Positions 1 through 20,900 of a stretch of 64,000 bases of DNA are shown here, in pieces. The DNA comes from Sminthopsis crassicaudata (lineage: Eukaryota): contig NC_133622.1 in NCBI RefSeq assembly GCF_048593235.1, positions 251,104,055 to 251,168,054 on the forward strand. The letters run 5' to 3'. The notes below the pieces were generated by a model. That model searched no databases and was not told where the DNA came from. It worked only from the letters and a program-made list of their open reading frames with translations. Each line of letters begins with the position of its first letter. The stretch's first letter is position 1. The translations under genes and the position numbers were made by a program.

Positions 1-280
1 ACTATCCTGGTCTAAACAAATTATCTGTTGTTTCTTTCAAGAAATCTTTAATTGTTTTGGTAGATCCATGAGAGATGTACTGGATAAGAATCTCCAAGGT
101 GATGTTTGCTTTACCAATTCAAATGCCTTTTTAAAAGCAACATAAAAACACAACGGGATCTTATATTCTGGACAATTTTCAATCAATTCGCCATCTATAA
201 AGATATGGTCTATTATAGGCTATCACCTGCAAATGTCTGCTTAGTCCTCTACTAAAATGGACTTTAAAAGATGTAGGGAG
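1..280 (-). mobile_element. Degraded RTE-clade LINE fragment (reverse transcriptase region)
   Basis: Minus-strand conceptual translation ...DHIFIDGELIENCPEYKIPLCFYVAFKKAFELVKQ resembles the RTE RT motif (CREYKIPLCLLFVDYKKAFDSV) and contains stops. It runs off the window start. Confidence 0.65.
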
Positions 281-3200
281 ACCGTGTGATGGGCTGAGCA
301 GAGAGGGAGAAAGCTAAATGATATAAGCTGAGTGCTGACCCGATCTCCACCTATAAGAAGGTCCCCATTACTTTGGGTGGCTTTTTGGTGGCAGATTCAT
401 TAAAGACAAATAAGAATCACCCTGTTTGAGAAGGCTTGATGATCTGGGAGCCTTGCCCCGAGAGAGGTGTCATACATCAGTGAGATCACATGTTCATTGA
501 ATACTTGATTTTTTTTTTTCCGAGATGGCTTTCGATGGGAAGGTAGAAATATGGCGACAAATACTTCTAGTGATTTAGACCTCTTCTGTCGATGAGATCA
601 TCTGCCAAGAAAATCATTGACAGCAACAGCTGGGAACTTGAGGATAGTGGAGAGTTTAGCATACTCTAGGAGGAAATCGACAAGGGAGGACTAAAAAGAA
701 GGGGCAGAACATGGAAAGTTCATGAGAAGTAATAAATTCTGAAGGTCTGTCCTGATAACCCAAAGTGGGAAAATGAACAAAGACCCTTTCTGGCTGTCCT
801 GAGTGGGGGGAAAAGGCAAAAGGGCAGCATCTCAGAGGGAGCTGAATAGAAATCTTCAAGAGCATGCTTTCTGGCGATTTGCTCTGCACGAGCAGCTCCC
901 TCTTTCCAGGCATCCGAAGCACACTGGGTTTTTGACTGGCTATAGGCACAGGGCTCAGGGTAGAAGCAGAAGCAGTTCTCTTGTCTGGCCTGGATATATA
1001 ATAGGCCCCCAGGGAAGGGATGCAGTCTCTCTGCACCTCCTTGCAGAGAGATGCTGGGTCTAAGATGAAGGATGCGGTAGACATTTTTGGACATAAGACA
1101 ACATGGGAATGGTTTTCTGGACTATGGGTATTAACAATAAGGGTTTGGTTTTTCTTTTTAATTGGGAGTGGGAAGAAGTTAAATTAATTAAATGGATCTC
1201 AAATGAAGGAGAGTGACTATGAGGAATACTTTGGTTCTAAATCTCTGAGTTTCCTTTGACCCTGAGCCTTTTACAGATTGAAGTTGAAAAGGCGCAAATT
1301 CCCAAAAGATTTTGTTGGACGCAAAGGTTCACTGTCTGGAATTACATTTGTCAATTTCTTGCCATTTCTGAAATTCTTCCCCACACAGTTCTGAAAATGA
1401 CTTTCTGCTGAGATGCTAAGCAGAGAAAAGTATGGTGGGTAAAAATAGATGGGTTGGGGGGCTTGTTTTAACCTGGTCTCAGCACACAGACTGAAAGCCA
1501 AGCCTGTTCTAGTGCTCCCAGTGGGGGGCAGGAGCATTGTGGCTCAGAGTGTGTGGGGCCAGCCTGTGGTCCTCCAAAGGGAAGAGGGGGGCCCTCAGCC
1601 AAGCCTCCAGCTCAGGCTTTGCATCTGTCCGGTAATGGCGGAGTTTCAGGCTTCACAGTGTTCTCTAGTTGCCATCACCCCTCCTCCAGCAGGGGCCCGA
1701 ACTTGGTAGGGTTTTGTCCACTTCAGAATTCTCACCCCCCTGAGGGGGAGGGAGGAGAAAGCATGGTGGGCTCTTTCACGCCTCAATTAACATTTGCCTC
1801 TCCCACCTGAAAAAAAGCCAAGACTGGTAAGAGGTGGGGCAAAAAGCATTTCTTGCCTTGACAGAATTCACCCTCAACCAAAATTCAACCGCATATCGCT
1901 TGCCTTTCTTTCAATCAAAATAACTGAGGATGTGAACACATTTCCCCAAAATCATAAGATCAGGCAATGTCAGGCAATGAAACCTAATAAAACCAAATTA
2001 GAAAGAGACAAGGAGCCATGAGGTGTCTGATCTGAGACATCTCTAGGAATACAGGGCATATTGCTAGGATTTCTTCCCAAAGCCATCCAGCGCAGGAGGA
2101 CCCTCGCTGCATCTCAGGAGCCTGTGCAAGAGAGGGCAGACCGCCTGTCCTAAGCCGCCATCAAGAAGTCTTGCACACCGCCCTCCCGCAAGGCCCGTTT
2201 CATATTTGTGGCCTCCGAAGCCATGGAACTTCGTGGGACAGGTGTTCTTGCCCCCCCCATACAGGTCACAGCTTTTTGCTTTTTGGATCACTGGTCACAC
2301 TAACCAAGAACACCAGGACCTAGGTATTCAGCTCCAGAATTCCAGAATGTCAGAGAAGGGAGACTCTTTGGGGTCATGTGCTCCGAGCTTCTCATTCAGC
2401 AGAGAAAGAAACTGAAGCTTAGAGGAAGAAAAGTGACGTCTCCAAAGTCAAACAACTAACGAGGGACAAAGCAAGGTCCCGAATCCAAGTCTGGCAACTC
2501 CAGGTCAGCTTTTTCTTCTAAGTTCTAGGAAACTGTCTTGTACCAGTGGCTAGACTCCGCTGACGCTTAATTAGCTTAATTAATGTGATGATGAATGTGA
2601 GGTAAATCTTAATGTTTAACCAAAATCAGCTAGAATTTAAAGGCCAATGGATGAAATAATAAAGATAATTTTATATCATTGAGTATTACAGATTTAGAGC
2701 TGGAAGGAACTTTTAGGGGCCATGAAGTCCAAAGACCTCATTTAACAGAGGAGGACACTGAGGCCAGAGTGGGGCTGTGCTCTGCCTGAGTTCATAGAGA
2801 TACAAGGTAAGAGAGGGAAGATTTGAACTCAGGTCTTCTGAATCCAAAGCCAGGGTTTTCCCACTATGCCATAACTCTTGTCTAGTCCATCTGGAAACAA
2901 CCCGGGGCTGCCTAAGATCCTCCCAAAAGGGCAGGAAGCCACTGACACCAAACAGCCCGGCCTTCACCATGACTGTGCTCCTTTCCTATTTGGCCTGCTG
3001 TCTTTTACTGTGCTCCCTTTCCCAAGTAACCTTGTAATTGTAACCTTTTGTATTTTACTTCTTTATTTTTACACAGCAATTGGCTTAAGTGATTTGTACG
3101 GGGTCACGCTTGAACTCAGGTCTTCCTACTCCAGGGCCAGTGCTCTCTCTGTTTTACCCCAGAGTGCCTCTCTGTGCACTTGAAGAACTGCCCAAGGGGC

Positions 3201-4896
3201 CAGGACATGGCTGATTAAATCGGCGTCACTAGGACATAGAGATGGCACAAGCTTGACAAGTCCTGGGCTCTTGGAGCAGAACAATGAGGACTTGGAATCC
3301 AATTCCTTCATTTCAGAGAAGAGGAAACGGAGGCCCAGGGCCTGAAAGGTCACACATCATCCCAGAAGCAAAGCCGGGATTTGAACTCCAGACTCCTGAT
3401 TAGAGACTCTCAACTTTCTTTCCAACAGATTCCACTGCAAATGCCATATTCTGAATAATGTATTGGAATATGGAGAGGGCTTTAGAAGGGGCAGATTAAG
3501 TGCTGGCAATTGAGGAAAGTTCTACAAAAGGCAGTTTCCATTCAGACAATCCCAAGGACCAGAATCAAGCTATCCTCATCATTCCCACCCTGGGATAATG
3601 GTTCCAGCAGGGGGCAGCACCAAGGACCAATGTGGCTACTTAGGGGAACATTGGATGCACTTACAGGGCTTTGGCTGGAGGCTCCTTTCCCCTTGTGTGG
3701 CCTTCCTTTGCTGGGGTTACTCTGCCGATCATTGGACAATTGTAGGATGCTGGATTAGGCAGTTGGTAAATCAGAAAAGCAAAGCTTGATACTCCCTGGG
3801 GCCAGGGAATCTCAGAATGCTGGGCTGCCATCCCAGCAAGGCGGTGATCTGTGGAAAGGAGGAAAACAGTGTCTTTGGCATTTGTGTTTTTGAATTCTTG
3901 CTAATTAATGTTCAGTGAGCTTTTTGTCTATCTGGTGAGTGGTTTATGCCCACCTTCCTCTTGCCCCGCAGGACTGGAGAGGCAGCAGGGGACTGGAGTG
4001 CCCAGAAAGATGTGGATGGGGAACAGTAGGCACAAAAGTACGATCCAAAGGGAAGGAGAAAGAAGGCAAAAGGACCAAAAGATTTTGCAAAAGTGTATAT
4101 GGAAAACTATCTTTGCATGTATTTGGACCTATTAAAAAAAAAAAAAAAAAGAAAGAAAGAAGGCGAAAGGGACTAATGGCCAGCTTTGGTTTGATAAGGC
4201 ATGGAAGTATCAGGAGAAATCATCTTTTTATCAGATAAGGTCATGGGAAAATGGACCATTATCATTTTTTGTTGTTGTTGTTGAAAGAAGAGGGACTTAT
4301 TGGAAGAAAGAAGGGTGTTGAAAAGCATAGGTTAGGGAAGGTCTGTTGGGATCCCTGATGGCTCCTGGACCTGGCTAGGGATTTGTCTAAGCAGGCAGGT
4401 GCACTGGCAATGTGGGGGAGAGGAGGAGTCCCAAAGGGTAGCATTAGCTAGGGGAAGGTGGGAGGAGGCAGAGGAAGCTTCCTGATCCTCACCTTGCAGT
4501 TCTTTTATCACTTCATTCTTTCTCCTGAAGCATGCTTAGAGACATACCACCAGGCACTCCAGTCTGCAATCTTCCAGGTTTCTTCATTCTCCATTCTTTG
4601 CTTCTCTAGAATTTTCATCAGAACCTGCCTTCTCCAGGCCTGTTCTCCTTGCCCCTCATGATTCCCTTCGAAAGGCCTGGCAGATGGCATCTCCTTCCTT
4701 CTGTGTGGTCTCACTTTGGGGCACCTGTCAATAGTACTGCAGCCCCACTTTTCTGGGTCCTTTCTAGAGTCCCACATTTCCATCTTCTTCCCTTGCAAAG
4801 CCCCCATCAAGTCCATTCTTTCTAAGTTCCCCCACCCCTAATGGCTCGATGCCTTCCTTCATGCCACTGGTTGCTTCAGCCATAATCTCTCTCCCT

Positions 4897-7356
4897 CTAT
4901 CCCCCTTCAGGCTCCTTCTCCCCCTCTCCTCCTTCAGGCTCCTTCTCCCCCTCTCCTCCTTCAGGCTCCTTCTTCCCCTCTTCCCCTTCAGGCTCCTTCT
5001 CTCCCTCTCCCACTTTCTCCCCACCCTGGGGGACCTCCTTCTTTTCCTCAGCCCCTTGACCAGGCTGCTCCCCTTCCATCATTTCTTGGGCTTTTACAGG
5101 GCTCGTCTTCCTGCTGGCTTCCTCTCCTTCGCTGGCTATGTTGGCTGTGTTATCTGTGGCGTCCTCAAAGTTGGCTTCTGAGAATTGTGTCTCAATCTTT
5201 TTGGGAAGGTTACCTTCCTCAGCAGATACTGATTTCTTCTTTTCGTACTCTTCTGACCCTTCTTCTTTTGGAAGTCCCTCAGTCATTTCCTGGTCTTCGC
5301 TCTTTTGCTTGGCGACCCCTTCAATCACTAGCCATAAGGCCTGGCCATGGTCCAGGGGCTCATCGCCTTCAGGAGTCCTCACACCTAGAGTCTGCTCATC
5401 TTCTGTTGCCAGAAGCTGCTCAAGTTCTGTTCCTGAGGTCAGCTCGCCTTCTGTTCCTGAGGTCACCTGGCCTTCTAGCCCGGAGGTCAGCTCATCTTCT
5501 GCCCCTGGAGTCACCTGGCCTTCTGGGCCAGAGGTCAGCTCCTCTTCTGCTGCTGAGGCCTGCTGGCCTTCTGCCTCTGAGGTCAGTTCACCTTCTGCCG
5601 CTGAGGCCTGCTGGCCTTCTGCCTCTGAGATCAGCTCACCTTCTGGCCCTGAGATCCGCTCGCCTTCTGGCCCTGAGGTTGGACGGCCTTCTGCTTCTGA
5701 GGTCAGATCCTCTGCCTCTGAGGTCGGCTGCTCTTCTGCCTCTGAGGTTTGCGGGCCTTCTGGCCCTGAGGTCTCCTCCCCTTCTGCTCCTGAGATCTCC
5801 TTGCCTTGGGCCTCTAAGATCTCCTCATCTTGGACCTCTAAGATCTCCTCATCTTGGGCCTCTAAGATCTCTTCATCTTGGGCCTCTAAGATCTGCTTGC
5901 CTTCTGTCTCTGAGGTCTCCATTTCTACCCCTGAGGTCTGCTTGCTTTCTGACTCTGAGGTCTCCTCCTGTACCCCTGGAGTCTGCTGGCCTGACCTTGA
6001 AGACCGCCTGCTTTCTGCCCTTGAGGACCGCTTGCTTTCTGGCCCTGAGGACCGCTTGCTTTCTGTCCCTGAGGGCCGCCTACTTTCCACAAGTGAGGGC
6101 CTCCTGCTTTCCACAAGTGAGGGCCTCCTGCTTTCCACAAGCGAGGGCCTCCTGCTTTCCACAAGCGAGGGCCTCCTGCTTTCCACAACCGAGGACCTCC
6201 TGCTTTCCACAACTGAGGGCCTCCTGCTTTCCACAACCGAGGGCCTCCTGCTTTCCATAACCGAGGGCCTCCTGCTTTCCACAACTGAGGGCCGCTTGCT
6301 CTCTGAAACCGAGGGCCGCTTGCTCTCTGAAACCGAGGGCCGCCTGCTTGCTGCCCCCGAGGGCACCTTGCTTTCTACAGTGGAGGTATCCTCACTTTCA
6401 GGGGCGCCTTCTGTTCCCGAGGTCTGTTGGCCTACCCCCGGAGTCAGTTCTTCTGCAGCTGGGGTCTGCTCTCCTTGTACACTCGGGGCCTTGTCGAGTT
6501 CAGTGGCGGGGGTCTTCTCACTTTCTGACCTAGTAGCCTTCCGTGGATGCTCCACTTCTGCCTGGGCAGCTTCAGCCGTGGGAGGATGCTCTATTGGCCC
6601 GGCAGCTCCGGTCTCTGAGGGAAGATGCCCTTCTTCTGGCCAGGCAGCCATCGAAGGATGCTTCTCTTCAGCCATGGAGGGATGGGCTGTGACAGTTTCA
6701 GCCACAGAGGGATGCTTCTCTTCGGCCCTGGCAGCTCCAGCCACAGAGGGATGCTTCTCTTCGGCCCTGGCAGCTCCAGCCACAGAGGGATGCTTCTCTT
6801 CGGCCCTGGCAGCTCCAGCCACAGAGGGATGCTTCTCTTCGGCCCTGGCAGCCTGTGGTGTCTTGATTGGTTGTGGCTGGCCGCCGCTCTCCTCCCCGCT
6901 GAGCTCCCGTCCGGCGGGGCCTTCGGTGGACTCCTTGGAAGCAGGTGAGGGTGGTGGGGGTGGCGGGGCTGCTGGGTGGGCCGGCACCTTCGTTTGGGGC
7001 TTCAAGCTGTGGCCCCGCACCTGCAGCGGCTCCCAGCTGAACCACAGCTTCTCGTGCAGGATCTTCACGCATTTCCGGGACTTGGGACCCCTGCCCGGGG
7101 ATCTGGACTGGGGCTGGGTCGGGGACGGCGAGCGGGAGGGCAGCTTCTTGACCTGCAGGGTGTCCCGGATCCTGTCGGCCTCAGGGATGACGCTGGCCCA
7201 CGGCGGCAGCTTTGGCCGCGTCCGGCCCTGCTGTCGGCTCGCCAAGCGGCGGCCCTTCCCCTGCACCGGGAGGCGGCGGCGGAGGTAGCCACGGGCGCGC
7301 GTCGAGGGCCGCAGGCCCGGCCGTTTGGCTCCCCCGGCCCAGGGCGAGGGCTGCAT
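4897..7356 (-). CDS. Uncharacterised intronless acidic, repeat-rich protein of 819 aa from the ATG at 7356; the frame stays open to 7746
   Basis: The frame is stop-free for 2850 nt and ends in TAG at 4897-4899. All internal repeat periods are multiples of 3 (39, 24, 24 and 27 nt). Composition is E/S/G/A/P-rich after a basic non-repetitive N-terminus. The 5' end lies in a CpG island. Confidence 0.7.
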   Translation of the reverse strand: MQPSPWAGGAKRPGLRPSTRARGYLRRRLPVQGKGRRLASRQQGRTRPKLPPWASVIPEADRIRDTLQVKKLPSRSPSPTQPQSRSPGRGPKSRKCVKILHEKLWFSWEPLQVRGHSLKPQTKVPAHPAAPPPPPPSPASKESTEGPAGRELSGEESGGQPQPIKTPQAARAEEKHPSVAGAARAEEKHPSVAGAARAEEKHPSVAGAARAEEKHPSVAETVTAHPSMAEEKHPSMAAWPEEGHLPSETGAAGPIEHPPTAEAAQAEVEHPRKATRSESEKTPATELDKAPSVQGEQTPAAEELTPGVGQQTSGTEGAPESEDTSTVESKVPSGAASRRPSVSESKRPSVSESKRPSVVESRRPSVMESRRPSVVESRRPSVVESRRSSVVESRRPSLVESRRPSLVESRRPSLVESRRPSLVESRRPSGTESKRSSGPESKRSSRAESRRSSRSGQQTPGVQEETSESESKQTSGVEMETSETEGKQILEAQDEEILEAQDEEILEVQDEEILEAQGKEISGAEGEETSGPEGPQTSEAEEQPTSEAEDLTSEAEGRPTSGPEGERISGPEGELISEAEGQQASAAEGELTSEAEGQQASAAEEELTSGPEGQVTPGAEDELTSGLEGQVTSGTEGELTSGTELEQLLATEDEQTLGVRTPEGDEPLDHGQALWLVIEGVAKQKSEDQEMTEGLPKEEGSEEYEKKKSVSAEEGNLPKKIETQFSEANFEDATDNTANIASEGEEASRKTSPVKAQEMMEGEQPGQGAEEKKEVPQGGEKVGEGEKEPEGEEGKKEPEGGEGEKEPEGGEGEKEPEGG
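4904..5010 (-). repeat. 27-bp coding tandem repeat x4 (GEKEPEGGE)
   Basis: Unit ccttcaggctccttctccccctctcct starts at 4904, 4931, 4958 and 4985. Confidence 0.9.
5998..6348 (-). repeat. 24-bp coding tandem repeat x15 (ES[RK]R[PS]Sxx)
   Basis: The translation SRRPSVSESKRPSVSESKRPSVVESRRPSVME...ESRRSSR contains 11 RRxS and 4 KRxS motifs. Confidence 0.95.
6699..6852 (-). repeat. 39-bp coding tandem repeat x4 (AARAEEKHPSVAG)
   Basis: Near-identical units start at 6699, 6738, 6777 and 6816, with degenerate copies toward 6640. Confidence 0.95.
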
Positions 7357-8700
7357 CCACGGGTCGATGCTCCACCAGCTCTGAGGGGTCAAGCGCTCCT
7401 CTTCGGCCGCCAGCCTCCGGCCCCACACGGCCACGCCCCGCTGCCGGACCGAAGCGCGGCGGCTGTAGCCTTGGTGCCGGCAGCTGGGGCCCGTATCCCA
7501 GCGCCAGGTGCCCGCCTCCCCGCCCCAGGGCCACGGCCACACCCGCACCCAGGCCAGTCGCCCAGGCCTCCAGCCCAGGCACACCCTTATCCTCCACCCC
7601 GTCGTCTGCGCCCGCCCGCCCCGGCATCGGACCCGGCGACGCCCCCTCCCCCGCCCCAGCCCCAGCGCTCCCCCAGTCCCGCCCTCGCCCCGCCCCTGAT
7701 CCGCCCGCGGACCCGCCCCCGGCCTCCCTGCCCTCCGCCAGCCCAAAGGCGTGGGGCTGGAGGGCGGAGGGGCGGCGCAGGCGCAGCAGCTCGAGGCCCG
7801 CTGCGCGCCCCGCCCCTGCGCCGAGGGGAGGGGCTACGCCTGCGCACCAGCTGCTTGCTCTGGGCGCTCCGGGACAAAGGCGAGCGAAGGGGCGGGGCGA
7901 GAGATGGGCCCTGGGGGCCGGGGAGAGCCGGGACTGTTTTGTTATTCGCTGGGCGTCCCCAGAGCCTAGTAGCGTGCATGACCGTTAGCAGGTGCTTTAT
8001 TAAGTACTGTTCAATAATGCTCGTGCAATGATTGACGAGGAGGGGAGGAATGGGGTTGGGGCGCAAGAGAGGAGGGACGGAATGAAGGGGATGGGGACTT
8101 AGCGGAAAAGAGCCTTGAGGCGTGGGAACCGGCCTGCTCGGTGGGAGCTGCCCGACTAGCGCTTCGACTCCAGCCCCTCTCGGCCGTCTCCCCCGCTCTC
8201 TGAGACCCGCATTCTCCCTTAAGAGGCGGTGCCCGCTGCCGGGAAAGACGGACGGACAGGCCAATGAAAGCACGGAGGCCGGGCCCTCCGTCCATTCAGA
8301 GCGCACTAGGGGCGGAGCCTCGCGGTCTACGCCTCTCTCTAAACTACTCTCCCGAGGGCGCGGGTGGAAGACTGGGCCGGCGCGGTCCCTGCAGGCTCCA
8401 TTCATTCTTCATCTGGGCAGGGCGGGGGAGGAGGGCTGCAGGGGTGGCGAGCGTCTCCCAGGGCCGGGGAAGGGGTCGCGGCGGACGGAGCGCCCAGGCG
8501 GCGGGAAGCGAGCCCTCGTCCTCCCTTTCGTAGGAGCAGAAAAGTGGAGGTGCAAGAGGACCTGTGATGGAGGAGAATCCCGACCCTGGGGAGGAGCGCC
8601 AGGTAACGGGAGGGACGGATGGGGAAGAGGGACGGCCGGAGGGAGGGAGGGATGGGGAGAGAGGTTCATGGGGGGAGAGAGGGTGTGGGGCCGCCTCCTG
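6900..8700. promoter_or_regulatory. CpG island and divergent promoter region between the orphan ORF and SNX32
   Basis: Very high GC and CpG density, multiple GGGCGG boxes, and an NRF1-like GCGCAGGCGC near 7780. Confidence 0.7.
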
Positions 8701-11700
8701 CTAGCAGAGAATGGGAAGGGCCCTGAACAGGCAGAGCGTGAGGGCCGGGGCAGCTCTCTCCCAGGGAAGGGGGGGAGTCACGGAGGACCTCGGCCGTCCC
8801 TAGCCCAGGCTCAGTTTACAGATCAGGCTCGGAGAGTCGGTGTGCTCAAAGCCAGGCAAGAGGAAATCAGCAGAGCCACGCGTGGCCCCCACAGCTCTGG
8901 CTCCCGCTCTTTGCTCCTCCCTCCTCCTGAGTCACTCACAACCTGTGAGGGAAACCTGAGTGACCTATGGGACCCCCGGGATCCCACCCTCCCACCTCTG
9001 CTGCCTTCTCCTCAGGCCGCTCCCAGCTGTGTGTCCGTGGGTGTCCGTGGGTGTGTCCATGTGTGTGTCTGTGTGTCCGTCCATGTGTGTCCGTGTCAGT
9101 AATCCGTGTGTGTGTCCATGTATGTCCATCCCTGTGTGTCCGTGCGTGTCCGTGTGTGTGTCTGTGTGTCCGTCCATGTGTGTCCGTGTCCGTAATCTGT
9201 GTGTGTGTCCATGTATGTCCATCCCTGTGTGTCCGTGCGTGTCCGTGTGTGTCCGTGTGCGTGTCCGTGGGTGAGTGTCCATGCAGACAGGCAGAGCGCA
9301 GCGGCTGACAGCAGGCCTAGCTGGTCTCCAGGGACCTTGCCTTGTACTGACCGTCACAGAGAGAACAGACCGAGGGACACAGACGGAGGAGGGAGGTCAG
9401 GAGAGAGGCAATCTCCTGGTGGCTGGAGAAGTCAGAACCGTTCTCAGAACAGGAGCCAAAGTTGAGCCGACCAAGTCTCCCCAGAGCAGACAGACACACA
9501 GGGCCCTGGACGGGTCGCAAGACATGGAGAGCAATTGAAACCAGTCTGGTCCAACTAGAAGTTATTGATGGCCCACGTAGGCTGCCATTGGGGTGGGTCT
9601 TGGGGGCGCTGCCCCGGGTGTGTTTCTGTACGTGTGAAGAGGACTGGGCTCTCTAAGTTGCAGCACAGCCCCCTGGCTGAGTTTGGGGGGCGAGCCCCCC
9701 TTCTGCGGGCTGCTCTTTTCCATCCCTAATGAACACCTTGGCTGGTGGGATTCCTTAGTCTATCAGGGAGCATTCCTCAAACCCCTGCCCGCTGTGCCAA
9801 GGACTTCCCGTCCACGGACAAAGTGGAATCTTGTGTCCTTTGACAAGCTTTGAGGGGCTTGAAAAATGGGGAGGGGTTAGAGCTGGGAGGTCCAGCTTGA
9901 GGCCAGACAGGATCCACAGCGGCCTCCAGGTGAGAGGGAAGAGGCCAGTTGTTCCACCACAAAAGGTCACCCTTCCCCTTGGGCCAGGAGAGCTTCCCCC
10001 CTCCATGTCATGGTCTCTGTCATGGAGAGGGCTTCAAGGAAGAAGGAAGAATACCACCCATCTGTGTCCTCCGTTTTGATTGGAAACTTTCACAGACACA
10101 GATCTTTGTGGAAGCCTTCCTGGTGGGTCTCTGGCTAATCATACCCATTTCACAGATGAGAAGGCTGACAGATGTGGAAAGGGAACTGCCCTGGAAGGCT
10201 TGGCTCCTGACAGTGGGTCTTTATTTATATAGCTCTTTCAATATACTCTGAACTTTGACCTCCTATCTCCGGGGAGCCCCACTCAGTGGTGTAAGGTGAA
10301 TAATGCAGAGACCTCAGCTCCCCAAGCCAGCCTCTAGGATCCAGGTCTCCCCACCAGTTCCCTGCCGGAAAGCCAGCTTGACCCCGGACGGACAGCCGGC
10401 CTCCTGAGTGAGGGAAGGGGAGTCCTAGGAGCACGGACCGGTTTCGTGTTCATTTCTGAAGGAGGATGTTCTCGGGTCATTCTGGAGACTCGGGGCCACA
10501 TGAGTGATAGGGCAGGAGCAGTGAGGACACAGTAAGCTTGAGGAACACGAGTCCCAAAGTGGGACAGGATCCGAGGCCCCAGCCCAGCCCCACTGCTTTG
10601 GTGACTGTGGCCAAGGGCCTGAGAGGGCCTTTTTAGGGGCTTTGCTGGAAGGATTCTTAGGCGCGGGGGAGCGGTGGGCAAGGAGGCCAGGGGCCAACCC
10701 CGCTGTTTCCATGGGTCTGCAGGGAGATGGCGCCTTGCAGGTGGAGATCTCTGATGCCGTGAGTGAGAGGGACAAGGTGAAATTCACGGTTCACACCAAG
10801 GTGAGGTCGCCACTTCCCCAAATGGAGACTGGTTCCGAGGGTCAGGGGCCCGGACAAACAGATTCAGCCCCCACGTACTTTAGGAAACTCCTTCTCTAGC
10901 AGAGCCCTGTGTGGTTTCCAGCTTCCTGCAGTCTCCTCCAATCGCACCCTGGGTTCTGGCTCCCAGCCCCAAGCCCCATGGGATTGTGGGAAGCATCCCA
11001 GAGCAGAGCAGGGGGGAGGAGGATGTGTTGGGAGTCCGGCAGGGAGCGAGGTGGCCAGGGCGCCTCAGTGGGGAACCCTTCCTTTCAGAGCTGCCTCCCC
11101 CACTTCAGCCAGACTGAGTTCTCCGTCGTCAGGCAACACGAGGAGTTCATCTGGCTCCACGATGCTTACACCGACAACGAGGACTATGCGGGCATCATTG
11201 TGAGGCACTGGACTCGGACCCCGGGAGCTGGCAGGGATCCCCTGGAGGCCAAGTGCAGCTGGGAAGGGAGGAGGTGGACCGGGCTCCGGGAGCCCACTGG
11301 ATACGGCCTTCTTAGCTCCTTTCTGTTTTGAGCAGATCCCCCCGGCTCCTCCCAAACCAGACTTTGAGGCTTCAAGGGAAAAGCTGCAGAGGCTGGGGGA
11401 GGGGGACAGCTCAGTCACCAGGGAAGAGTTTGCCAAAATGAAGCAAGAACTAGAGGGGTAAGACACTCCCTCCCCTCCTTCATTCACCCCCTCACCCCTC
11501 AACTCCCCATTTCCAGGGGTGTGGTATAGTGATTGGGGAGGTCTGGCACCAGGAAGCCCCAAGTTCTAGTCTGCAGCGGTCACCAATCCTTTCTCCTCTC
11601 TGGCCTTTGACCTTTCTCACAGAGGGGCTAGCCAAGGCTCCTCCATCACAAAGCACTCGGGGAGTCCCTGAGGCCCGGGGAAGGCTCCCGTCCCACGGGA

Positions 11701-17948: not shown

Positions 17949-20900
17949 GGTTCCGGAAAGGAGCGAGCGAGCGAGGGAGGGAGGGTGAGGGAGGAAACGA
18001 GGGCCACAGGAGAGGAGGGAGTCGCTCCTTCGCCGCTGCTGCCTGGAGCCGACTGAACGCGGCCTCTCCCGGCCCCTTCCGTTTAGTAGGAACCGCACAA
18101 TGAGAGGCGGGGCGAGCTTCCGGCGCTTCGGGGACGGGGCAGACGGGAAATGGAGTTCCGTCGCGCTGCGCCGCCCCGGGGCACGCCGGGAAGTGGAGTC
18201 TCCCCTTCTCCTCCGCAGCAGGTCTAGCTCCGGCGTTCGGCCCCTGCGGAGAGGGGCGGGGCCAGAAGCGCCGGGAGCGCTCCCCCATTGGTCTATATCT
18301 CGGCCTCCGCTGCCCTGCCGATGCCTGCTCGGGCTCCCGGGGCGAGAGACCTGGAGTCCAGAGGTCCTTGTCACAGCTCTAGGTCCCATTTTACAGAGAG
18401 GAAAGCGGAGGCCCAGAATGGCTGGGCTCCATATATGGCGGACGGAGAAACTGAGTCAGAGAAGCCGCAAACCCAAGAACTTGGGCTTCCACGTGAAGCC
18501 CTTTTCTTTTTCGAAGGGCCGGCAACTCCGCAAACCCGGACAGCCAGAGACCTAGGGGGCGCACTACGTTGGACGGGGTTGCCGTGGTGTGGGAGTGGGG
18601 GGGAAGGAGCAGGGGGGTTGTGTCCCCATCTCATTCCCTCGGATATGCGGATAGCTCAGGTTTGCAGAACTGTTAACGGAAGAAAGAGCCCCCCATTTTA
18701 CAGACGGCAAAACTGAGGCCCAACATAGGCAGTGATTTGACGCGGGTACCGTGCAGATGCAAACCTCAAAGCAAAGGCAAGGCCAAAGCAAGGTCGCCTC
18801 CGCCCCCGCGGCAGTTCTCCCCGCCCACTTCTAGCTAGGACCGAGCGCGCGACTCGAAGGGGCCAAGGAGAGCGGCGATTTCGCAGGCAAAGCCGGCCCC
18901 GAGCCTTCCCCGTGGGAGGGGAGGGGGCGCGGGTCTCGCGGTCGCCATGGAGACCAGCCCCCACCCACCAGCTAGCCTACAGCTTCGGGATGCCCCAGAT
19001 CGCCTTATTAGGGCAAGAGCCGTGAGGGGGCGGAGCCAGGGAGAACGCTCGTTCACCGCGCCTTATATGGAAACTGAGCCTTATTTGGAAACTGCGGGAG
19101 GTCCGGCCCTAGGTTAATGTGTGCTTGGGGGGGGCCTCGGCGGAGGGTGGGGGCGGGGAGGGGGGGCCAGATGGCCTGGCCGAGGCTCTGCTTGTCCTTG
19201 ACCCATCGACGAGACGCATGCCGGGGTTTCCTGCCCAGCTTCTCTCTGTATATATCCCGGGCTCTATCCGGGGAGTTTCCTCTGCGGATTTCCCAGGTTC
19301 TGTCGGTCTCTAAACATTTCCCGGGTACTATCCAGCCTTCTCCGGACATTTTCCAGTCCCCTCTGCGCATTTCTCGGGTTCTATCCAGAATACATTTCTC
19401 CCCCCCCCCCAAGTTCTATCCGGTCCTCTTTGTAGATCTCCCAGGCTCTATTCAGAATGCACATCCCCCAATTCTAGGCGGTTCCTTTTGCAGATCTCCC
19501 GGGCTTCAGCCAGTTCCCTCAGCACATCATTAGGGATGGGGTCCCCTCTGCGGGTCTTCCGGGATTCAATCCCCTTTGTGAATTCTCCAGGCTTTATCCC
19601 CCAAGCTCCAGTCCCCTAGGCTTTTCTAGGCTCAATCCCTTCTGCACACCCCCTGGAGGCAGATGCCCTTTCTTGCAAGTGCTCGGGCCTCTAGTTCTCT
19701 CTGCACGCCCCCTGGAGGCTCCTATCCTTCCTGCAGATGCCCAGGCCCATCCCGCTCAGTGCAGAACCAATGGAAGCCAGGTCAGAGCGGCTTTTTCTGC
19801 CCTCCGACCACAGGAGACGCTGCGGCCGTTTTCCCCACCCCCACGCAATACTCCTCGCTTCTTCCTTTTTCCTACGGCCAGAATGCGGAAGAGGTGGAGC
19901 CTCGACTCCGGAGTTCCCCAGTAGGAAGAGCCCAAATACTGACTGCCCGGGGGGGGGGGCGGCGTGAGAGCCTTTGTTCAGAAGCAACTATTCCTGGGTT
20001 GGGGGAGTAGCGTTACTCCCTCAACCCCGGCAAAGCCCGAGAGCCGGGGCGGGACCTCGGGGTCACGTGGGCCGCTCCCAGTCCGCTCCGGACTGCCCGG
20101 GCCTGGGCTGGATCATGGCTGCGACCGCGCCCCGCCTGGGCCGGAAGCGGCCCCTGCCTGCCTGTGCAAACCCGCTTTTCGTGCGGTGGCTCCGCGAATG
20201 GCGGGACGAGGCGGCCGAGCGGGGCCTGCGGACGCGCTTCGTGTACCAGAAGGTGGGCTGGAGGGGAGGGACGAGGGGCGGAGCCTGGAGTGGGGCGGGG
20301 CGAGCGGCCGCTTTTCGCAGGTGGGCGGGGTGTGACAGGGAAGGGGGCGGGATGCTTGGTCTGGGAAAGGGGGGGGCTCCCACTAGCTGGATGGCGGAGG
20401 GGGCGCGCCTGGGGTTTCGGGGAGCCCCCGGGGCAGATTCAGGGGCCCCCCCCCGCAGATCCAGCCGGTGGCCTTGCAGGCCTTGCGCTCCCTGCTGCGG
20501 TACCCCCTGCCCCTGAGGAGCGGCAAGGAAGCCAAGATCCTGCAGCACTTCGGGGATGCCCTGTGCGGGATGCTGGACCGGCGGCTGGAGCAGCACCGGG
20601 CGTGCGGCCCCGCGGAGCCCGGTGAGCGGCGGGCTCCGGCGGCCCCTCCCTCCCCATGCCCCCCATGTGTACACAAGCTGGCTCCTTGCGCAGGAAGCCT
20701 TGGGCTGGAGGGTCGGGTCGGGAGGTGAGGGGCGGGGCTTCAGGGGTCCGGGCGGGGCTTCGCCCCTGCCCCCACCGCAGCCCCGGCTGAGGCAGGGCTC
20801 TTTCTCCAGGCCCAGGCCGGCAGCCCGAAGCTGGGCTCCCGCCAGCAGAGTTGAGCACACCCCGCGAGGAGCCGGTGAGAAGGGCCCCCCAAGGCTCGCT
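17500..20900. promoter_or_regulatory. CpG island and head-to-head CFL1/MUS81 promoter region
   Basis: CpG-dense. NRF1 palindrome CGCGCATGCGCG at 17571-17582, GC boxes and ETS-like CCGGAAG motifs. Confidence 0.8.
18429..19088. promoter_or_regulatory. Four perfect CArG boxes (SRF sites)
   Basis: CCATATATGG 18429-18438, CCTTATTAGG 19003-19012, CCTTATATGG 19061-19070, CCTTATTTGG 19079-19088. Confidence 0.75.

Follow-up and report, generated by a model that had tools for sequence, protein, structure and literature searches.

Does the long stop-free frame on the minus strand at positions 4897–7746 of this stretch of Sminthopsis crassicaudata DNA encode a protein, and from what could such a protein have been built? 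Within the window, by which we mean the whole analysed stretch of 64 kb, the frame runs for 949 codons without a stop, and its first in-frame ATG, at 7356, opens a reading frame of 819 amino acids (aa) that ends with the terminator TAG at 4897–4899. Our analysis indicates that this open reading frame (ORF) is probably translated. With somewhat less assurance, we favor the fuller statement, in which a lineage-restricted gene encodes a disordered polyampholyte regulated by phosphorylation. A sequence-only reading of the locus had described a stop-free frame of 2.46–2.85 kb filled with repeat arrays, and both the frame and the arrays proved to be as described, with 949 codons in total and 819 aa from the ATG. 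The coding sequence (CDS) is as follows.

4897–7356, minus strand: CDS, 819 aa plus stop, entirely inside exon 1, with no internal frame-0 stop.

The sense strand is T-poor (12% T) and long open frames are therefore cheap; one antisense frame is also open for 742 codons, so that composition adds to the openness. The observed frame nevertheless exceeds what composition provides, both as a whole and outside the repeats. The sense frames 0, +1, and +2 contain 1, 30, and 32 stops, respectively, and the lone stop in frame 0 is the terminal one. Among 1000 dinucleotide-preserving shuffles, the longest open frame had a mean length of 255 codons and a maximum of 518, as compared with the observed 949. 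Frame 0 is also open through each of three non-repeat segments, namely 7356–6853 (shuffle P = 0.075), 6698–6378 (P = 0.026), and 5392–5016 (P = 0.002). Their joint openness in this frame has a probability of about 4e-6, while the other frames contain 1–10 stops in the same segments. The 404 nucleotides (nt) directly 3' of the terminator contain 8, 5, and 4 stops in the three frames. An ATG-initiated ORF on the plus strand (5138–7288, 716 aa) was also considered as a gene and was rejected, given that the splice sites lie on the minus strand and that its frame contains 5 stops over the region. Its openness mirrors the scarcity of T in the coding strand.

Tandem arrays were located with Tandem Repeats Finder (TRF) and occupy much of the ORF between the non-repeat segments. 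The arrays are listed from the N-terminal to the C-terminal side of the product.

6571–6861, minus strand: 39-nt (13-aa) array of AARAEEKHPSVAG, four identical copies followed by degenerate EEKHPS-type copies (TRF: 39 nt × 3.9, 100% identity, 6699–6852).
5992–6351, minus strand: 24-nt array ES[RK]R[PS]Sxx, 15 units, with 15 [RK]RxS motifs, 11 of them RRxS consensus sites for basophilic kinases of the protein kinase A (PKA) type (TRF: 24/48/72-nt periodicity, 5991–6376).
5800–5898, minus strand: EILEAQDE sub-array of the 24-nt family, predicted to form a single long helix.
5392–5799, minus strand: acidic TS[GE]xEGxx sub-array of the 24-nt family, about 17 units, with Ser in an S-x-x-E context (TRF: 24-nt periodicity over 5390–5967, covering this sub-array and EILEAQDE).
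4900–5010, minus strand: C-terminal 27-nt (9-aa) array GEGEKEPEG (TRF: 27 nt × 4.7, 4890–5015).

All repeat periods within the ORF are multiples of 3, and weak arrays 5' of the ATG (7643–7719) have periods of 11, 16, and 22. The expectation that every period preserves the frame thus holds inside the ORF. The 24-nt tract maintains a continuous 8-codon register, in which the unit shifts gradually from ESRRPSVV through ESKRSSGP, ETSETEGK, EILEAQDE, and EISGAEGE to TSGPEGEL, and the register shifts inside the tract comprise whole codons. The ESKRSSGP unit and the acidic unit EGERISGP share their codon phase and agree at 20 of 24 bases (P < 0.0005). Judged by these unit sequences, the basic, EILEAQDE, and TSxxEG 8-aa arrays are sub-families of a single diversified 24-nt minisatellite, and the ORF therefore contains three repeat families in total rather than five independent modules. 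The five arrays that the sequence-only reading had named were all recovered by TRF. Approximately 70% of the coding sequence probably arose by in-frame minisatellite expansion, in the course of which one 24-nt unit gave rise to the basic, helical, and acidic arrays.

The predicted product has a mass of 87.5 kDa and a pI of 4.86, and it is rich in Glu (17.7%), Ser (11.8%), Pro (9.8%), Gly (9.6%), and Ala (8.9%). The charges are distributed unevenly along the chain. Two non-repetitive regions flank the repeat arrays or lie between them.

6862–7356, minus strand: basic non-repetitive N-terminal region, aa 1–165, pI 11.75, net charge of about +22, with R/K clusters and SRSPSP motifs.
5011–5391, minus strand: non-repetitive acidic C-terminal region, with the sole moderately confident helix (aa 670–693; predicted local distance difference test score, pLDDT, 65–76).

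The middle block at aa 336–455 contains 15 [RK]RxS motifs, including 11 RRxS and nine RRxS[VLIMF], the last with V or L at +1. These motifs match the consensus of PKA and related AGC kinases, and their serines are additionally placed in S-x-x-E. Residues 420–819 carry a net charge of −74. An AlphaFold model from the single sequence has a mean pLDDT of 38.6, and its regular elements are only two, a long helix in the EILEAQDE block (aa 485–520, pLDDT about 55) and the helix at aa 670–693. The protein is thus predicted to be intrinsically disordered, although a single-sequence model is weak evidence for this. Both composition and predicted structure agree with the earlier description of an acidic, repeat-built, disordered protein. 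Most probably, the product is a disordered polyampholyte of approximately 87 kDa, composed of a basic head, 15 ES[RK]R[PS]S units, a short helical EILEAQDE block, and an acidic tail.

Sixteen RNA-labelled runs from seven studies contain 32–95% of the sampled words of 4700–8100. Four runs (X1, X5, X6, and X7) were compared over 3001–9000, where X5 derives from organism B and X6 from organism A. The word depth in X5 and X6 lies between 120 and 570 from about 7604 down to 4493, and it is zero at 4201–4400 and 3001–3600. A joint between 3848 and 4493, present in X5, X6, and X7, removes 3849–4492; its ends read CT..AC on the plus strand, corresponding to GT..AG on the minus strand. After this joint, coverage continues over 3848–3665 and then into at least 143 letters from outside the window. 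A single X5 contig of 1920 nt joins the outside exon, exon 2, and exon 1 at 4493–6112, including the stop and 1.2 kb of the ORF. The same unitigs were found again in four runs from four studies. X1 and X7, which are listed as 'RNA?', cover exons, intron, and flanks evenly, as DNA or unprocessed RNA would, and are little informative. The genomic splice signals comprise a donor AAG|GTGAGG after 4493, a pyrimidine tract and CAG before 3848, and a donor CTG|GTAAGT after 3665. The resulting structure downstream of the CDS is given below.

4493–4896, minus strand: 3' untranslated region (UTR) part of exon 1, with stops in all frames, ending at the donor AAG|GTGAGG.
3849–4492, minus strand: intron 1, 644 nt, GT..AG, with zero depth in X5 and X6 and with a high-copy repeat and poly(T) inside.
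3665–3848, minus strand: non-coding exon 2 of 184 nt, with the donor CTG|GTAAGT after it.
1–3664, minus strand: intron 2, at least to the window start, with a loose contig end at 3665 in X5 and X6.

Exon 1 spans at least 3.1 kb and carries the complete 819-aa ORF, and the exons after it, at least two in number, are non-coding. No part of the 64-kb window matches the start of exon 3, and the gene therefore extends past the left end of the window. The last exon seen lies outside the window, on the side where OVOL1 is expected. Reading the sequences of exons 2 and 3 revealed no meaningful ORF, and neither exon 2 nor the 3' part of exon 1 contains a poly(A) signal. The transcript is on the minus strand, spliced, and abundant. 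Its GT..AG sites and the high depth of the RNA contigs agree with the minus-strand transcription unit expected from the sequence-only reading. The gene is not intronless, as that reading had proposed: it comprises at least three exons with at least two introns 3' of the stop, and only the CDS is uninterrupted.

Two minor features of this part of the transcript were noted. At 4001–4200 in intron 1, the word depth in X1 and X7 rises to about 900, as compared with about 15 around it, marking a high-copy interspersed repeat, and a poly(T) tract occupies approximately 4130–4160 of the same intron. The 3' UTR part of exon 1 contains a 102-aa ATG-initiated ORF on the minus strand (4508–4816), which ends 15 nt short of the splice donor. 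It was rejected as a second cistron, since it belongs to no Pfam family and is missing from the protein collection, with homologues not searched, and it is probably a chance product of purine-rich sequence. A joint between 4932 and 7886 in X1 was likewise rejected as a splice, in view of its non-canonical ends (TT..GC), its 21-nt side, and its low-complexity sequence.

Variation between the runs and among the repeat units provides signs at the codon level. Fourteen units at aa 344–455 of the basic array are regular. Across them, the six motif codons show five synonymous changes (GAG/GAA, AGC/AGT, CGG/AGG, TCG/TCA, and TCC/TCT) and two conservative ones (R/K and P/S). The two codons that close the unit are free to vary (V, L, G, R; S, V, M, T, P, A). 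A repeat without coding function would hardly be expected to show such a codon-aware pattern. The sole indel seen inside the ORF is a 27-nt in-frame deletion at 4904 in the transcript of organism B (X5), corresponding to one GEGEKEPEG unit. The 3' UTR contains a 4-nt insertion at 4815 (TTCT on the plus strand) in X1 and X7. Organism B is otherwise identical over the compared contigs. Five distinct single-nucleotide polymorphisms (SNPs) fall in the 404-nt UTR part and four in the approximately 2 kb of covered ORF (Fisher p = 0.009), and the SNP density in the ORF is thus about six times below that in the adjacent 3' UTR.

The 5' end of the transcript lies in a CpG island together with that of a plus-strand neighbor, which is probably SNX32 and is described at the end.

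7357–7604, minus strand: minimal 5' UTR (X6 contig 6823–7604), GC 77–83%, with no upstream AUG.
7200–8600, no strand assigned: CpG island with GC boxes, GC fraction 0.68–0.83, observed/expected CpG ratio 0.7–0.9.

Farther 5', the nearest AUG (7627) is in another frame and beyond the end of the X6 contig at 7604. Since there is no AUG between 7604 and 7356, the AUG that opens the ORF is the first one in the observed RNA. The 5' ends of the two genes are separated by no more than about 400 bp within one CpG island. With the minus-strand transcript reaching at least 7604, the plus-strand exon ending at 7991, and both transcription start sites approximate, the arrangement corresponds to a bidirectional pair, defined by opposite-strand 5' ends that lie within 1 kb of each other in a CpG island. 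The island at 7200–8600 is the promoter region common to both divergent genes. The plus-strand neighbor is nearly silent in X5 and X6, where the minus-strand gene is abundant, and the pair is therefore not co-expressed there. A literature search for SNX32 with 'bidirectional promoter' found nothing.

No relative of the product was found in the collections searched. Neither the 819-aa nor the 949-aa product matched a Pfam family. A word-indexed homology search with the full protein, aa 650–785, and a 300-aa C-terminal piece, the last of which admits candidates of 165–525 aa, returned no matches. The 159 aa of the N-terminus that lie outside the repeats were compared exhaustively by phmmer with 1.84 billion representatives, again without a match at whatever protein length, not even the protein itself. 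Exact look-up of ten guessed contig-sized fragments in the protein collection found none, a metagenome scan for host-derived relatives gave 246 pattern matches and no confirmed one, and Rfam yielded nothing over 1–10000. In the Atlas feature search, the whole protein came closest to a cluster labelled 'fibrous sheath CABYR-binding protein isoform X28' (cosine 0.70), aa 640–785 to the same FSCB-labelled cluster (0.65), and aa 1–165 to 'Treacle' (0.66). Scores of 0.65–0.70 are below the trust level of this tool and are routinely reached by shuffled sequences, and they therefore reflect compositional likeness, not kinship. HMMER, word search, Atlas, exact look-up, and metagenome scan thus all agree with the description of the gene as an orphan. 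From these sequence comparisons, the gene appears lineage-restricted, although the empty searches are no proof that it is new to annotation.

FSCB, which occupies a different chromosomal locus in eutherians, is the nearest functional analogue. Like the present gene, it has a single coding exon and encodes an acidic, disordered protein of about 800–1000 aa with short repeats. Unlike it, the gene described here has introns in the 3' UTR and a regular array of 15 units for its kinase sites. HMMER and word searches detected no sequence similarity between the two, so that by homology the gene falls outside the FSCB family. According to PMC7401351, FSCB is a PKA target encoded by a single coding exon, and mice that lack it are fertile.

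The motif content of the middle block raises the question of regulation. By their sequence, the RRxS[V/L] units could be substrates of a basophilic PKA/AGC-type kinase, which we propose only tentatively. The classical consensus of these kinases is RRxS with V or L as the next residue, and Ser133 of CREB lies in RRPSY, with the same RRPS core. One phosphate per unit would change its net charge from +1 to about −1. Multisite phosphorylation of the 15 units would then shift the middle block, situated between the +22 head and the −74 tail, by about 30 charges, and this shift may alter how the block pairs with partners or with the acidic tail. In this way the product might act as a phospho-regulated scaffold, by analogy with the role suggested for the sperm protein FSCB. 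A related principle operates in Nopp140 (NOLC1) and Treacle, disordered proteins of short Ser-rich charged units whose charge is set by multisite phosphorylation. The present product is likewise disordered, with arrays of Ser-rich units in charged contexts. It differs from them in having no homology, in carrying its basic and acidic units in separate blocks where those proteins alternate them, and in central sites that fit basophilic kinases (RRxS) as well as S-x-x-E.

Several observations weigh against a translated, regulated product, and most of them can be accommodated by a long non-coding RNA (lncRNA) transcribed upstream and divergently from the CpG island of SNX32. Its ORF would yield no functional protein and would be open through the T-poor strand and stop-free young repeats, to which the 742-codon antisense frame testifies as a contribution of composition. 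The stop is located 404 nt 5' of the first exon junction, with at least two junctions after it and later exons that lack an ORF. The exon junction complex model marks such a layout, which is common in lncRNAs, for nonsense-mediated decay (NMD), yet the spliced form is the dominant high-depth species in X5 and X6. This NMD-type layout, unexplained beside an abundant transcript, is the main argument for a non-coding RNA. The start at 7356 has a weak Kozak context (T at −3, C at +4), and the following AUG (7072), which is out of frame, has a better one. Besides the lack of a homologue, exact look-up of the full product in a collection of 15 billion proteins showed that it is absent and apparently unannotated there. 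All four SNPs in the ORF are nonsynonymous (K719E, I576M, T298I, and E256G), and individual residues are therefore weakly constrained, as is common in many disordered proteins. The kinase switch, for its part, is a tentative proposal from motif matching. Composition does not account for the 30 and 32 stops in the other sense frames, for shuffles that stay at or below 518 codons, or for the shared frame of the non-repeat segments (about 4e-6). Nor would a non-coding RNA be expected to contain three independent repeat families with periods divisible by 3, whole-codon register shifts in the 24-nt tract, and an RRxS core preserved through synonymous variants. The mRNA is also abundant and fully spliced. 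We consider the lncRNA explanation unlikely on balance, though the strongest of the competing ones.

A somewhat lower probability is given to the alternative that the gene is a fast-evolving orthologue or paralogue of a named mammalian gene, such as 1700020D05Rik or an FSCB-like gene, whose similarity has decayed in a disordered, repeat-rich protein. The position beside SNX32 agrees with the sequence-only reading, in which 1700020D05Rik, a small uncharacterised gene, is said to lie near mouse Snx32; in the literature found, this mouse gene is listed solely as 'Unknown'. The FSCB-labelled cluster came first in Atlas for both the whole protein and aa 640–785, at values (0.65–0.70) below the level that shuffled proteins often reach. 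The N-terminus had no phmmer match among the 1.84 billion representatives, the C-terminal region and the 300-aa piece had none in the word searches, no Pfam family was assigned, and FSCB lies elsewhere in eutherian genomes. What does favor such kinship is that FSCB, too, is a PKA target with a single coding exon (PMC7401351). It is very improbable that the locus is merely a neutral minisatellite tract or an assembly artefact whose RNA signal stems from genomic DNA contamination or read-through. The even cover of flanks and intron in X1 and X7 would suit this explanation, but X5 and X6 show zero depth on intron and flanks against 120–570 on the exons, two canonical minus-strand junctions are present, and four runs, each from a different study, have these unitigs in common.

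Taking the ORF as coding, a possible, though distinctly uncertain, origin can be outlined. The gene would be a young coding gene that emerged from a divergent transcript of the SNX32 CpG-island promoter, and its CDS would have grown mostly by in-frame minisatellite expansion, with one 24-nt unit giving rise to a 15-site kinase array, an amphipathic helix, and an acidic array. According to the model of Wu and Sharp, new genes can arise from the divergent transcripts that CpG-island promoters produce. As in such transcripts, the 5' end lies no more than about 400 bp from the opposite-strand first exon in the same CpG island, the ORF is in a long first exon with a lncRNA-like structure downstream, and no homologues were found. 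In contrast to them, the ORF of 819 aa is far above the length of typical young ORFs and is mostly the result of in-frame minisatellite expansion. If this young-gene origin is correct, tandem-repeat growth would have turned a promoter-upstream RNA into a large, phospho-regulated disordered protein, and the mRNA would keep the 3' UTR introns of its non-coding past.

Taxon-restricted, repeat-built disordered proteins are a kind already known. What goes beyond the ordinary here is the set of three in-frame minisatellites as a readable origin, the regular array of 15 kinase sites, and the fact that an abundant transcript has an NMD-type layout. A translated ORF would specify an unannotated 87-kDa protein without a relative among approximately 15 billion predicted proteins, whose origin would be legible in the DNA as three minisatellite families grown in frame inside the first exon of a divergent transcript. 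Its 15 PKA-type sites beside a tail of −74 would offer a natural test case for multisite charge switching in disordered proteins, and the abundance of its mRNA despite the NMD-type layout would bear on the means by which young genes avoid decay. Without translation of the ORF, the locus would instead warn that lncRNA exons rich in repeats can look like long genes.

The plus-strand neighbor was delineated from a GT..AG joint in X6 that connects 7991 to 8534 (joint 7989/8532, cut +2).

7850–7991, plus strand: probable non-coding exon 1 of SNX32, with the 3' end at 7991 (CAG|GTGCTT) observed and the 5' end approximate.
8534–8602, plus strand: probable first coding exon of SNX32, with ATG at 8567 and donor GTAACG.

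Further open segments on the plus strand are of the SNX5/6/32 type, two of which match Pfam PX, and the PX exons are found at 10.7–12.7 kb. Open segments at 19968–23800 on the same strand are MUS81-like, and the order seen here fits the eutherian order SNX32–CFL1–MUS81–EFEMP2–CTSW. The neighbor is thus probably SNX32 rather than SNX5 or SNX6, the name being drawn from synteny. For the head-to-head arrangement with SNX32 in the sequence-only reading, this means that the divergent pair in a CpG island stands on splice joints and PX exons, and the name SNX32 on synteny. Farther along the window, 303 N at 30738–31040 mark an assembly gap or a masked stretch. On the 3' side of the probable first coding exon of SNX32, a GT-rich compound minisatellite occupies 9028–9285 (93-nt unit × 2.3 at 94%, sub-periods 10–24) and yields spurious Cys/Val-rich ORFs.

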